From Phallusia mammillata (Eukaryota): DNA of 64,000 nt. Positions 1 to 6,500 of this stretch are shown piece by piece. The notes beneath the pieces were generated by a model. That model did not search any database. It saw only the letters and a list, made by a program, of their open reading frames with translations, and was not told the origin of the DNA. Within the stretch, counting starts at the first letter, position 1. Each line of letters opens with the position of its first letter. Made by a program: the position numbers and the translations under genes. The stretch covers positions 4,650,001-4,714,000 of the forward strand of contig OZ281497.1 of the NCBI GenBank assembly GCA_965637545.1, given 5' to 3'.

Positions 1-1
1 C

Positions 2-3000
2 GGACCTTGTTACGATTACAACTCTTGGGGTATTATCGCAAAACCATTCATTATTCTTCTTTCGGTCATTAGTTTGATCAAAGAGGTATTACTTTTGTTT
101 TATTTTTTATTATTGGTGTGTTAAGAGATTTTATCTACCTCCATATCCTAAAGCAAGTCATGTACATTTTTGGATTAATGTGGCATTAGTTGTTTTTGTT
201 AAAACTTTTTATTATTATTGCAGTTATACCAACTTGTGTCCCAAATGGCCTCCTACTTCCAAAGCCTTACCAATCTTCTTGAAGTTTCACTTTACGTTCT
301 CGCAATTTTCACAGTTTATTCTGACACAAACTCGGCTGGCTACTATGGTATCAGAGAGGTGGGTAATTTACCCCCAGAGGTTTTGCAATGAAGTTAACGC
401 TTTCCATATTGTTGCTCACAGGATTGGCAATGGCAGATTGGAGCAGTCAGCATTTTTCTTTCTTGGATGGTTTTGATCATGTTCATACGTAATGTGCCGA
501 CATTTGGAATATACGTTCTAATGTTTACCGAAATCCTTCGTACATTTATGAAGTTCTTTTTTGTCTTTATCCTCTTCATATTGGGGTTCGCGTTCAGTTT
601 TCATTGTTTGCTGCAGAATCAGGTGGGCCATGCTTCTGTGACATGTAATAAAAATGATTAAGACTTGTTTAATTTAGTAAGCTTTAAACATTTTTGACAA
701 GCAGTGATTACAGCATTAAAATACCCTGTAGTGCAGGGGTGGGGAGCCTGCGGCCTTTAAGGGCACTAGGTGCGGCCTTCGATGTCAAAATACAATTTAG
801 GATGTTAACAATACACACTGCACCAGGCACAAAAAAAATAGACAGAAACGTATTTTTTACCTTTATTCCACATTACTATTTGATTGGTTCTAGGGCAGCT
901 GTTTTCAAACTAGAGACAAGTGGTTGCCTACTGGTAAACAAAGCGATTTCCGTAGGTCTGCCAGAGACCCAGTTGTACAATCTTGCATGTGTTGTGAAGA
1001 ACAATTGTTTGCGCATAATCGAATGTCTTAAACTCGTTTGTGATGTCACAACCTGCTCGTAGATTATTATTGATAAACAAGCGAGTTTCTACATTAATAA
1101 AATCCCGAATGTTGTAGTGAGTTGGAAATGCAGTGAGGAACTTTATTTAGCTTGGACTGCAAGTTCAATAGCACATCGACCAGTCTGTAAGTCAAAAAGT
1201 TTGAACACACTGTCCTTGGCCTGGCCAATAGTCTGTGCGATCTAAACGAGTGTCGATAAACCGTTTGGCGGCCTTCACAAACAAAAAGGTTCCCCACCCC
1301 TGCTGTAGTGTATTCATGTGGTAAAGGGTGTGTTATGACGCAGTATGCATTTCGACAATGGTGGGACGCGGTGTTGAGGACTTCTCTTATGATGCTTGGC
1401 GAAATTGGGTTTGAAGACATATTTTTGACAGGAGAGGAGGCAATTGATACTGGAGCGGATGACCACACGATTATTGTTTCTGCCGTAAGTTATTTCTATT
1501 GCATTGGTGGGCGTTTTGTTTTCGACAGTAAACAAACGTTTACTACCACAAACAACGACTTCTTTTTGAAAATATGTCTTAAATTATAACCAGCCTTTTT
1601 ACGAAATGCGCCTTACTGTTTTCTTTTTTCTAAGCTTGTCTAAGTCACTTTGTTGTAAAGTGTTTAAAGAATTTGCACGCACTTTCAAGTCACGTGCGTA
1701 CGTGCAACATGAAAAACAATTCATTAAATGTCCAGCGAAGCTGGTGGTATTTGTTTTAGTTTTTGACGTTATTTTATTTGCCTCCTGTAAAATGCAAAAA
1801 GCTGTACTGAATGGTTACTTTTTACAGGTAAACTACCCAGCGGTATCCTACATCCTCTTTGTACTCTCTCTTATCATATTAAGCATCATCATCATGAATT
1901 TGCTGGTAAAACTATTGTACTGCCATAAAGTAAAATACGGATGCAGTAAATAATCTTTTCATACATGCAGGTCGGTCTAGCTGTTGACGACATCCAAAGC
2001 ATCCAAGAAAACGCTAAACTAACTAGATGTACAATGCAGGTACTTGTGATACAATTAACTGCGACCCTAAGACCCAAAGTACTACAAAGCTCTGTAGCCA
2101 AATAAAAATATAGTTGGCAAAAAGCAGTGGTTGGTAATGCATTAGAGAATTACGTGTATTATTTTTGTTGTTGTGTTGATTTTATCTTTTACCACAGCAT
2201 ACAATGTATTTTTTTCTACAATCTGATTTGCAGGTAAAGCTGTTTCTGGATGTGGAATATAAATTACCCTCGTTTATTCGACATCGGGTTATCCGGAAAG
2301 AGCGGAAGTTGTTCCCAAACAAACACAGCAAAAGATCATTTTTCATACGATGGTTTAATTCCGAAGACAATTTGAATTCTTCGACTATTGGCTCCTTTTT
2401 GGAAGAGGTGGCTAAAAACGCATCTTTTACTGTCTGCTATATAATATGCTTTTTAATGGTGATAGTAATCTAATTTGCTGTCTGTAATGTAACCTAGTTA
2501 TCGAAAGTAAAAATGTTGCTAAAGTGTTCGGATAATTCATGCAACGAGTCGATAAACTGAATGTACATTTTTTTTTAGAACAAGAGCCTTGAGTTAGAAC
2601 AGCAGGCCGAGTCACCAGACCGATGTGTCGAATCACTGGTAGGGAAGGTCGAATCCCTGGTTGAGAAGGCAAACTACTTGGATGACAAAAAATCCTTGGA
2701 AGAAAAAGTCGAATCCCTGGGCGAGAAGGCCAATTCTGTAGGTGAGAAAGTCGAATCCTTGCAAGGGCAGGCCAAATCCCTTGATCGCAGAGTCGCATCC
2801 CTGGATGGAAAAGTCGAGTCCATGGATGGCAGAGTCAAATCCTTGGATGGTAAAGTCGAGTCCCTGGATAGTAAAGTCGAATCCATGGATGGTAAAGTCG
2901 AGTCCTTGGATGGTAAAGTCGAGTCCCTTGATGAGAAAGTGGAGTCTCTGAAAAGTATGATGTCAGCGATCTTGTCACATTTCAATATTGGTGAAAAAGA

Positions 3001-3031
3001 CAAAAGTGAGACAAGTCTTGTCACGATTTGA
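2..3031 (+). CDS. TRPA1: TRPA1-like cation channel, 3' part (S2/S3 through S6, TRP-like helix, C-terminal coiled coil); exons 2-85, 224-358, 422-622, 1344-1484, 1828-1905, 1971-2039, 2234-2407, 2579-3031; 5' part lies outside the window
   Basis: All junctions are GT-AG and phase 0, giving about 444 aa of open frame. WQIGAVSIFLSWMVLIMFIRNVPTFGIYVLMFTEILRTF (S4-S5), SLMMLGE (pore) and IMNLLVGLAVDDIQSIQENAKLTRCTMQV (S6/TRP-like helix) match TRPA1 family motifs. Confidence 0.9.
734..1302. mobile_element. hAT-type MITE in TRPA1 intron
   Basis: TIRs caggggtggggagcc / ggttccccacccctg; perfect 8-bp TSD ctgtagtg (726-733, 1303-1310). Confidence 0.9.
2630..2950 (+). repeat. Coding 21-nt tandem repeat (KVESLDG heptads) in the last TRPA1 exon
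   Basis: Repeating aaagtcga(g/a)tcc(c/a/t)tggatgg units; about 15-16 heptads in frame. Confidence 0.9.
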
Positions 3032-3384
3032 TTTTGTCTATTTGGCTTCTAGATTATTTGGATTTTGCAACAAACTAACAAGAAAAAATGTGCTATATTA
3101 TCAAATTTATCGCGTGAAATTTATTAAGCCAATATAGCATATTCAAAAAAGTTATTGTAAACTCTATGATGGTATTTGTTTAAACAACTTTAAATGTAAC
3201 TTTAATGTGGGTTTACATTTTGCGAGCACAAATTATGTGGTGAGTCGTGTAATTTAAAATGATTTGTTGGCAATATTGTGATACTGTGAATGTAGTGATT
3301 CAAACAGTTTTATTGTGTGTTTTTTACATTCCGAGTTAGACAGGCGTTGGATAGCTACAACTTACCCAGGAGTTGTGACACACC

Positions 3385-3573
3385 CAGTGGTGGGATACAG
3401 ACGGTTCGCACCGGTTCTGGAGAACCGTCTCACGAAATTTTATAAGATCAGCATTTCTGGTTACTGTCAATGGATTTTCGCATCTTATCTAAAACACCGA
3501 TTTTTGAGTTTCGACTGAAAAATACTACTTTTGTGCTAGAACCGACTGACAACAAATTTAAATCTCACTCCAG
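3385..3573. mobile_element. Short degenerate hAT-type MITE
   Basis: 5' cagtggtgggat, degenerate 3' atctcactccag, subterminal agaaccg; 8-bp TSD gacacacc (3377-3384, 3574-3581). Confidence 0.7.
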
Positions 3574-6500
3574 GACACACCTAGCATAAAACGTGTTAAA
3601 AATAAGGAGTTAGTTCTGATGCAAACAGTTTGGTCGGGTAGATATCCACATTATATACAAGACACTTGACGTAGGTGTGTATTTGTAATAAATCAAGGCA
3701 AAATATTAGTTTTAACAACCCAAGGCTGCCAAGTTGGTGAAACGCCAAATCATTGTCACAAAGATCGTTGTTGCAACTATACCACAGGGTAACGTGCAAA
3801 ATCTTGGTAATATGCCTAACTACATTTCTACTGATTTTTTATTGTGGCCTGGGATTTTGACTGGCCTGTAGGCACGTGCCTACTTTGCCTAATGGTTAAT
3901 CCAGCACTGCATTCGGCGCAGGTTCAATCCAGTTGTTACGCAGAAAAACGCTCCGTAGGCGATCACTTGCTCATTTTTATGCACGCCTGAAATAAGTCAA
4001 CTCGAAAGCACAGAGAAAAAATAAAACAATCAAACTTGCGCAATGCGCAGGTTTAAGCACTCGCTTCGCGCAGTGAAAACGTACCTTTATCCCTAAGCAC
4101 TCGTTATAACAACAGTCTGATTGCCAACGCTGGTGGTAATCTGCAATACTCTTACATCAAGTCAGCAGTGTTACATACAATCAAGTGCATCTTTGAAAAA
4201 CAATGCACGCAACAAGTTACGAAGGCCATTTCTTAATGCAAAGGCTCCATGTTAACTGAATCTATAACGCATCATTTAAAACCAAACTGAAGTTTGTGCG
4301 GCGTCATTTTGACTTTATATTAGTTAAATAGGTCTCTAAGATAGTTGAAAAACAGTATATTATTCCGTACAATTGAGTTGAAAATAACAGTCTTAAAATA
4401 TAGTACCATTTGTAAGAGTTGCTGATTATCCCACCTTTTTTTGAGATGTCTATGTGTGAGTTACATCTGGTCACGGCTGAGCACGACAGCAACAGCACGT
4501 ATTGTTGGCGATTTTGCGACTTGCGTGTTTTGCACTCGAACTTTGTGGACCAGTGAGTGGCTTGTTACTTTAGTTTTCCAACAGTATATGCAAGTGAGTG
4601 CTACAGTTTAGGATTTTCCAAACCATCAATCGAAACATGTATTGTTTAATGTAGCGGTAAATAGATATTGGACACTAGCAAATTTTAAGAACTCCTCCTT
4701 AAACTTACCAGACCAACTTTTAATTAGCTATATTTTTGCGTAGTCATTAAAAAGTGCCTGTATTTGTAGAGTTGTACAGTTATATTTACATTTTTTTTTT
4801 GAACATACACATTGATTTTTTATGAATATCCTGCTACTAAAATGTGTTTACAACAAAAACATAATTGTTCTAAACAAAAATAAAATATTTCAAATGTTTT
4901 TCAGATCGTCCAGGTAATATATAGGAAATTTACTTAAATGCTAATGTGTGTTAAAAAATGTGATTGAAGAAACAATAAAAACATATTTGGATGTATAGAA
5001 GACATAAGGTTGTATGCATGACAATCGATATACTACAGCAGGGGTGGACAATATTTTCAACCTAGGACACTAACTTACTTGTTTTTACAAAACGGTTTGA
5101 ATGCCTTTTCTGTGTTTTTCTGTGTTAACAACTTTTCTGTGTTTAACATGTTTTGCAAACATGTATGTCTTGGTAAGGGATTGAATTTTCACATTACAGT
5201 CATTAGACACTTATTGTATAGACTGTGGGATTAGGAGTTAACATTTGTAAAGGGTATTTTTCGAACCTTTTTTGGCATTTTGTAATGTGAACAAGCCTAA
5301 ATGTACCAAATTCAGCATTGATCCAAGTCAATACTAGCCATTGTCATGTTTTATAATACACTATAAAAATGCTGAGCAATGCTCAAGATAAACAATACAT
5401 CTAACCAGTCTCTGCTATTTATCAGGTCCATAAAAATATATGCCTCCATAACCAGTAAACTCTACTTTAAACTATTGTTTTCTTGCTCTGTGTAAATTAA
5501 AACAATCACTTAGTTGTTTGTAGTAAACACATTATGTTAGAGATTTGTAGGTTAATTATACTCTTCTTTTTCACCAGGACTGTATGAATGATTTGGAAAA
5601 CTGAAAGTTTTGAAAAGTCCTGGAGCAAAGGTGAAATCCATAACCAGTAAGTTATCTAAATATTTTTTTTTCAATATAAGCAAGTTCGGTTCAAGTCTTT
5701 CTTTAAAAAGTGTTGCATAGATTACCTACACCCAAAGGTTCTTGCTTATTGTATTGTGTGATAACAGGTAGTCATTACTTGAAAGTCAGCTGCCTTGCTT
5801 CTTTTTGTATAAATTATCTAATCTTCAATTGTAATTAGTTTTGTTCACTAAAACTGTTAAACTGTTATGGGGACAATGTCACTTAATGCCCTAAATCTGA
5901 AGTATTTAAACCGATTATAAATTCAAACAATTTTAAGGCAAAAATGATTCAAATGGCTTTATGGCAGATATTGTTTTTGTCTTCATTTTTTGTCTAATGA
6001 TGCTGTATTTTGCCTGTTAGGTCAAGAAAAAGTGCTTTAAATGTATTCAAGTTAACACACAATGTTTTATAGCCATTTAATCAAAATTCAACCATTGTTA
6101 ACCCAGAGGTTCCTCAAATGCGCCAATTTAAAAACTATTTGCTTTTAATTCATATACTGTTGGTTATCTTTTAGTCGAATTCACCCTTTTTACCCATTAG
6201 TCTGAAACTGTTAATAGTTTTTATGAAGTGTGTATTGTTGAAAGTTTTAGTTCAATCTGCTTAGTGGTTACATGTACAGTCCTGTATATCTGTTTAAGCC
6301 ACTTATCTTAAGGCACTGCCACCGAAGTCCTAAGGAAGTGATTTTCTGGGTTACATTTGTAGCAGTTTAAGCAGGTCGTCCTATACCTCTTACATTTTAT
6401 AAAATATACTATTATAGGTGTTGATTGTTGTGTTTTACCCTGTAGCCCAACATTTCCCCAACTATCCTGCCGGGCTCCTATACAGTACACAAACTATAAA

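Follow-up and report, generated by a model that had tools for sequence, protein, structure and literature searches.

What does the last exon of a channel gene at the beginning of the stretch of Phallusia mammillata DNA analysed here encode: a cytoplasmic coiled coil whose length still changes, or an extension that was acquired long ago and has been kept? The stretch, called the window in the following, comprises 64,000 nucleotides of the forward strand (NCBI GenBank assembly GCA_965637545.1, contig OZ281497.1, designated C4 below, positions 4,650,001 to 4,714,000). It opens inside a gene on the + strand, of which eight phase-0 exons with AG/GT boundaries (e1 to e8) are readable. Judged from its exons, this gene has the architecture of a TRPA channel with an ankyrin array, a six-helix pore domain and a C-terminal coiled coil, the latter being encoded by e8 at 2579-3031. 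An earlier note on this DNA had regarded e8 as the coil of TRPA1, extended by a minisatellite that is still slipping. As far as structure and evolution are concerned, we consider it probable that e8 is instead an old, selected, in-phase extension of the cytoplasmic stalk of the channel.

The e8 product can be divided into the following parts.

2579..2626, + strand: exon head of 16 residues, NKSLELEQQAESPDRC, homologous to the N..LEKQ head of the paralogues, degenerate and containing a proline
2627..2689, + strand: three proximal heptads, VESLVGK, VESLVEK and ANYLDDK, seen in the heptad layout and in the tandem repeat call at 2627-2669
2690..2707, + strand: KSLEEK, a unit of 18 nucleotides and six codons, which makes a one-residue break in the heptad phase (register -1)
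2708..2959, + strand: main array of 12 in-phase 21-nucleotide units, from VESLGEK to VESLDEK and VESLKSM, seen in the tandem repeat calls and the heptad layout
2960..3028, + strand: conserved tail MSAILSHFNI, which continues the a/d pattern and whose motif is kept in the paralogues, followed by a disordered acidic and basic end

Tandem Repeats Finder detects a 21-nucleotide period at 2749-2950 (8.3-8.8 copies, 76-80% matches, scores 151 and 194) and two more 21-nucleotide copies at 2627-2669. This repeat is real and lies well beyond chance. A super-period of 63 nucleotides, reported by the same program at 2743-2940 with a score of 226, was rejected as a higher-order repeat, the lag analysis being flat (13.5-15.7 of 21 positions identical across lags 1-6). 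Fifteen heptads were counted, three proximal ones and 12 in the main array, in good agreement with the roughly 15-16 VESLDGK heptads from a 21-nucleotide unit that had been claimed for the last exon. Position a is occupied by V in 12 heptads and by A in three, and position d by L in 12, M in two and V in one. After MSAILSH-FNI, 13 polar residues close the product. Two further attributes of the array were confirmed in part. The description as heptad-exact is correct within the 12-unit main array and fails at the 18-nucleotide unit at 2690-2707, so that the phase is unbroken only inside 2708-2983. The units do follow a gradient, being diverged at the 5' side and more uniform at the 3' side; the near-identity ascribed to the 3' units was not found, as every unit differs from every other, the best pairs agreeing at 19 of 21 nucleotides and the core units at 17-19 of 21.

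The comparison with related genes indicates how such an array may have arisen. In the 240-Mb genome, 29 matches to e7, the exon of the pre-coil linker, were obtained, mostly on C4, and about 27 TRPA paralogues are present, with the e4-e8 layout in place wherever it was inspected. The last exons of the paralogues have a common head (N-x-x-x-K-L-E-K-Q) and a common tail (S-M-E-S-M-M-S-A-I-x-S-H-F, within which the motif M-x-S-A-(I/L)-x-S-H-F is kept), and the number of heptads between them is variable. The distances from head to tail are as follows.

31 residues: two genes
35 residues: one gene
49 residues: three genes
52 residues: several genes
115 residues: C4_2.16
122 residues: C1_32.6
129 residues: C4_1.35 and C4_1.70
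135 residues: the window gene

Five of the eight length classes (31, 52, 115, 122 and 129) equal 3 modulo 7; these genes therefore differ by whole heptads, with head and tail in phase. The 135 residues of the window gene equal 2 modulo 7 because of the six-residue unit KSLEEK. As read from these sequences, the modulo-7 series is the strongest evidence that the coils grew by heptad units and that their phase matters, and it supports the proposed growth by units of seven codons. Two long arrays, those of C4_2.21 (C4:2.2156 Mb) and C4_1.87 (C4:1.867 Mb), have an atypical head without N..LEKQ and no e7 match within 1.5 kb upstream; these last exons may be orphaned exons, pseudogenes, or parts of genes with a longer last intron.

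The long coils do not appear to go back to a single event. The nearest neighbour of a unit lies in its own gene at a frequency of 0.64, compared with 0.24 in label permutations, none of 1000 of which reaches 0.64, and C1_32.6 has a unit consensus of its own (VESMNQK / VESVDQK). A tree of the e3-e7 translations has the form of a star-like radiation in which C1_32.6 groups with the genes for 35-residue coils (91/84). Forcing the five long-coil genes into a single clade costs 23.5 log-likelihood units (approximately unbiased (AU) test, p = 0.024); coil length was the criterion for this group, which was named only after a first tree had been inspected. Because the five-gene clade is rejected and each gene has its own unit consensus, the coil has expanded at least twice independently among the approximately 27 paralogues.

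Some further observations concern the family as such. Clusters of TRPA paralogues are located on C4 at 7.12-7.20 Mb, 13.39-13.42 Mb and 25.97-26.04 Mb. On C5, at 8.06-8.10 Mb, two sequence-identical occurrences of head-to-head TRPA gene pairs point to a recent segmental duplication. In C1_32.6, the 87-nucleotide intron between e7 and e8 (L003:1261-1347) is free of stop codons in frame, so that e7, intron and e8 form an open frame of 222 codons; its retention would add 29 residues right before the coil with the frame intact.

For the window gene, the following exons were assigned.

1..85 (gene start before the window), + strand: e1, coding, transmembrane region of the TRPA gene; open frame to a GT donor, and record 24 of run X9 joins 2-85 to 227-352
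224..358, + strand: e2, coding; phase 0, AG/GT boundaries, spliced RNA contig
422..622, + strand: e3, coding, S4-S5 region; PDB matches to TRPA1, RNA contigs 420-554 and 420-619
1344..1484, + strand: e4, coding, pore region; phase-0 acceptor at 1342-1343, donor at 1485, RNA contigs
1828..1905, + strand: e5, coding, S6; X9 record 28 joins 1836-1904 to 1970-2034, kept in paralogues
1971..2039, + strand: e6, coding, post-S6 helix (VGLAVDDIQ...); RNA contig, splice boundaries
2234..2407, + strand: e7, coding, pre-coil linker of 58 amino acids and 174 nucleotides; AG/GT, phase 0, joined to e8 by X6 record 22
2579..3031, + strand: e8, last coding exon, 150 codons plus TGA; open frame 1, phase-0 acceptor, RNA contigs

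Among the short exons, e6 is the most conserved across the paralogues. The read evidence consists of assembled contigs from four runs rather than raw reads, of which X2 and X3 are DNA and X6 and X9 were guessed to be RNA. In the RNA runs coverage lies on the exons, with none or almost none in the intron bins 1501-1800 and 2401-2550. Spliced RNA contigs connect e1 with e2 (X9 record 24), e3 with e4 (record 25) and e5 with e6 (record 28, 0-2 differences). The contigs on e4 span 1341-1484 with one letter different, one of them continuing from e3. Contigs of about 90% identity on e3 plausibly stem from paralogues, given that the e3 proteins of paralogues are 86-89% identical to each other.

The junction that matters most here, 2407/2579, was also recovered from RNA, as X6 record 22 splices e7 to e8 by running straight from 2229-2405 into 2577-2726, the offset of two bases corresponding to an AG common to the exon end and the intron end. 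That e8 lies outside the TRPA transcript, belonging to a distinct coiled-coil gene or being a terminal exon that is alternative or not used at all, or that the array is an assembly artefact, might be argued from the identity of just about 91% between this contig and the window and from run X9, in which e8 is without coverage. It is a most improbable account, as at least 15 paralogues likewise have e7 followed by e8 with conserved head and tail, and the acceptor is in phase 0. A second RNA contig spans 2875-3025 at 98% identity, and an independent DNA contig from X2 (2176 nucleotides) is identical to the window over 1275-3450, including the whole repeat. An origin of the spliced contig from a paralogue was considered and rejected, since none in the assembly resembles it sufficiently, the best identity at the level of the e7 protein being at most 63% and a second DNA copy of the exons being absent. 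The variant contig may stem from a divergent allele or from a recent copy missing in the assembly. The segment 2579-3031 is the spliced and transcribed terminal coding exon of a TRPA-family channel gene.

The assignment to the TRPA family is based on several parts of the gene. Searched against the PDB, e3 matches TRPA1 chains best (E = 2e-8 to 1e-7, including human and 1197-residue TRPA1), while chains of TRPV2/3/1 are weaker (E = 1e-4 and above). About 12 ankyrin-like open reading frame segments are located on the same strand in the 10 kb upstream of the window, followed by an S1-like exon. Of seven such segments scanned with Pfam, six exceed the curated cut-offs for Ank, Ank_2 or Ank_4 (E = 1e-7 to 1e-17), and the seventh gives a weak match below the cut-off. 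With e8, Pfam yields coiled-coil families only, among them the channel zipper CLZ (PF16526, E = 4e-9, above cut-off). Exons were searched singly, spliced translations having been joined only for the local paralogue tree. PDB searches with e4, e7, an e7 profile of 18 paralogues and two pre-S1 exons, each separately, returned nothing significant. The pre-S1 linker exons gave no significant alignment with human TRPA1 either; by eye, one candidate cysteine (LNKC) and an HPVV motif without a cysteine were noted. An exact-product look-up with the part of e8 that starts at an ATG yielded no entry, and searches with e8 of a whole library (phmmer, 1.8 billion representatives) and of a word index, run with exon-sized queries, returned generic bacterial and phage coiled coils and no orthologue. 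Eight channel-sized matches of e8 were checked with Pfam and have no channel domains, and nine short matches are unrelated heptad arrays. Thus, the terminal exon belongs to a TRPA-family gene, as its ankyrin exons, the e3 matches and the e7-e8 splice argue, and to this extent the attribution in the earlier note is correct; a one-to-one orthology with TRPA1 itself is unproven, since about 27 such paralogues exist.

Is the length of the array still changing? A young and unstable coding minisatellite, whose 21-nucleotide units are still gained and lost by replication slippage so that the stalk differs in length between alleles, would account for the tandem structure (Tandem Repeats Finder scores 151-226), for the greater likeness of the 3' units and for the whole-heptad differences between paralogues. 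The divergent RNA contig, with six extra letters in 2577-2726 and 101 letters past 2726 unplaced, could be read in the same way, but six is not a multiple of 21. With no identical units, the mean synonymous divergence (dS) between the core units of the window gene amounts to about 0.5, a noisy value from few sites. The duplicates C4_1.35 and C4_1.70 (dS 0.055) have exactly equal lengths and unit numbers, as do C4_2.21 and C4_1.87 (dS 0.24). Among the DNA samples, X2 is identical to the window across e8; X3, from another study, has SNP-rich flanking introns (SNP, single-nucleotide polymorphism), and among the variants listed for it e8 contains only 2704 A>G and neither an insertion nor a deletion nor a joint within 2579-3031. 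The minisatellite explanation is accordingly quite unlikely. With diverged units, equal unit numbers in sister genes and no change of length listed for the contigs of the two DNA samples, the expansion is probably old and now stable, and these data do not support the ongoing slippage and common length alleles that the earlier note had suggested.

For the e8 product, AlphaFold2 (monomer, no alignment) predicts a single helix at residues 13-134, i.e. 122 residues, with a mean predicted local distance difference test score (pLDDT) of 86 and values above 90 for 91 residues. Residues 1-12, which precede the proline, and the last 16 residues are non-helical, and the pLDDT is below 50 at residues 142-150. 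With about 1.5 Å per residue, the predicted rod has a length of about 18 nm. In the register of VESLDGK, V takes position a and L position d, and the D at e together with the K at g would allow g-to-e salt bridges between neighbouring parallel helices. Glycine is found at f in most units. The Pfam coiled-coil families, the a/d pattern in the 15 heptads and the long predicted helix all agree with the coiled coil that had been proposed for this exon.

These results suggest a course of events for the extension. The starting form would have been a coil of 31-52 residues between the head N..LEKQ and the tail M-x-S-A-I-x-S-H-F, as in the shortest members of the family, and tandem duplication of the 21-nucleotide V-E-S-L-D-G-K unit would have stretched the coil of the window gene to 135 residues. 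Because the unit equals exactly one heptad, every duplication would add two helical turns and leave the hydrophobic seam undisturbed. The product would be a continuous helix of about 122 residues and 18 nm below the pore, which may form a parallel bundle with its counterparts in the other three subunits, by analogy to the solved TRPA1 structures. More speculatively, the extra length might stabilize the cytoplasmic stalk, set which paralogous subunits co-assemble, or both.

Several points weigh against an old, selected extension in this form. We infer a parallel four-helix coiled coil along the full length of the stalk, and a tetramer over 18 nm is an assumption. According to work on core variants of GCN4, V at a combined with L at d is reportedly not the classic signature of a tetramer. 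Glycine occupies position f in most heptads, local irregularities of the coil would be expected at the six-residue unit and at the proline of the head, and the closest sequence look-alikes of e8 are fibre-like proteins of bacteria and phages. The spliced RNA contig with its divergence and its extra and unplaced letters belongs here as well, and rare length alleles may exist. In two paralogue pairs, moreover, the ratio of nonsynonymous to synonymous substitution (omega) is 0.67 and 0.42 for the coil, compared with 0.16 for e7, indicating weak-to-moderate constraint on its residues. This ratio, the f-position glycines, the one phase break and the fact that short-coil paralogues evidently function with 31-52 residues are what one would also expect of a neutral low-complexity extension, the distal helix of which is solvent-exposed or only loosely associated and has no specific role. 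We regard such an extension as unlikely, as five of the eight length classes hold head and tail in heptad phase and all 15 heptads retain the hydrophobic a/d pattern despite the unit dS of about 0.5. Length is also kept between old duplicates, and at least two independent lineages expanded their arrays and retained them. The three variants seen in e8, 2704 in X3 and 2923 G>A and 2947 T>C in RNA, are all at third codon positions and synonymous. An old extension that was selected and kept in phase thus continues to be the reading that we favour.

Comparison with known systems places the coil among the C-terminal helices of tetrameric channels. Vertebrate and insect TRPA1 (3J9P, 6V9V, 7YKR) has, like the window gene, a long run of ankyrin repeats at the N terminus, a six-helix TRP pore domain and, following the post-S6 segment, a C-terminal helix of coiled-coil periodicity. 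The four copies of this helix in human TRPA1 associate in parallel as a tetrameric coiled coil with the ankyrin repeats around it; the isolated coil is a weak tetramer, formed only at tens of micromolar and partially unwinding on warming, and a part in temperature gating has been proposed for it (PMC6386368). The coil of the window gene differs in being about three times longer, with 122 predicted helical residues that are near-repeats of one heptad. The coil of human TRPA1 comprises roughly 40 residues. A cytoplasmic C-terminal heptad helix on a tetrameric six-helix channel, as in e8, is also found in TRPM (tetramerisation domain PF16519), CNG (CLZ, PF16526), Kv7 and KCa3.1 channels, where it helps to set the assembly and specificity of subunits. 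Unlike e8, these coils consist of few heptads and contain no tandem array of a single unit, and the match to CLZ reflects composition, not descent.

In terms of the repeat itself, the bacterial and phage fibre-like proteins (DUF7310, PF23991, and unnamed ones) resemble e8 in the heptad V-x-S-L-D-x-K, present in 8-20 copies, for example as runs of KVESLDTK or KVDSLDQK. These are tail-tip fibres, adhesin stalks and small orphan proteins without channel domains, and since they have no other domain in common with the window gene, the likeness would be due to convergence. Apparently, V-x-S-L-D-x-K is a recurrent and easily amplified coiled-coil unit at which unrelated sequences arrive convergently. 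Small bacterial and metagenomic proteins (P0013, P0018, P0041, P0061 and P0130) contain 8-20 near-perfect copies of it, for example 11 copies of KVDSLDQK. The coding minisatellites of the streptococcal M protein are similar to e8 in that the length of the rod shifts by whole units with the heptad phase kept. Arrays of the M-protein type consist of near-identical units and vary in length between strains. In contrast, the units of e8 are diverged, and no length variation is found between samples or recent duplicates. Full-text literature searches found no paper on a heptad-expanded TRPA coil. Taken together, the sequences suggest that the canonical C-terminal coil of TRPA was lengthened about threefold by in-phase duplication of one heptad, and that this occurred recurrently in a lineage-specific family.

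Repetitive DNA was also encountered around the coding exons. One element lies in an intron of the gene.

733..1303, no strand assigned: insert of about 570 bp in the non-coding part of intron 3, similar to a miniature inverted-repeat transposable element, with an inverted repeat at 733-749 / 1287-1303

The terminal inverted repeats of this insert are 17 nucleotides long (GCAGGGGTGGGGAGCCT...), and with at least 40 copies of 84-94% identity on contigs C1-C8 it looks like a family of miniature inverted-repeat transposons. Just downstream of the gene, the contig depth at 3301-3600 and 3751-3900 is extreme in each of the four runs, reaching about 259,000 in X2 compared with about 76 in the single-copy flanks; these two segments are very abundant interspersed repeats. 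A tRNA-derived origin of the repeat at 3301-3600 was discarded, as ARAGORN finds no tRNA-like structure there.

What could the different stalk lengths mean for the TRPA family of this animal? One proposal, which we regard as doubtful, is that the coil lengths of the roughly 27 paralogues present together in this genome, ranging from 31 to 135 residues by steps of seven, act as a code for assembly or tuning. If this were true, stalk length and unit flavour would decide which subunits form a channel together or, alternatively, would set the thermal or mechanical stability of the stalk and hence the gating threshold, and the family would offer a naturally occurring range of coil lengths for the disputed question of how the TRPA1 coiled coil contributes to gating. 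With coils of about 4 to about 19 heptads on a similar channel body, the paralogues provide ready material for tests of assembly, partner choice, stability and gating. Furthermore, they would represent a clear case of a structural domain that was lengthened in phase by duplication of a unit equal to its structural period, repeatedly within one gene family.

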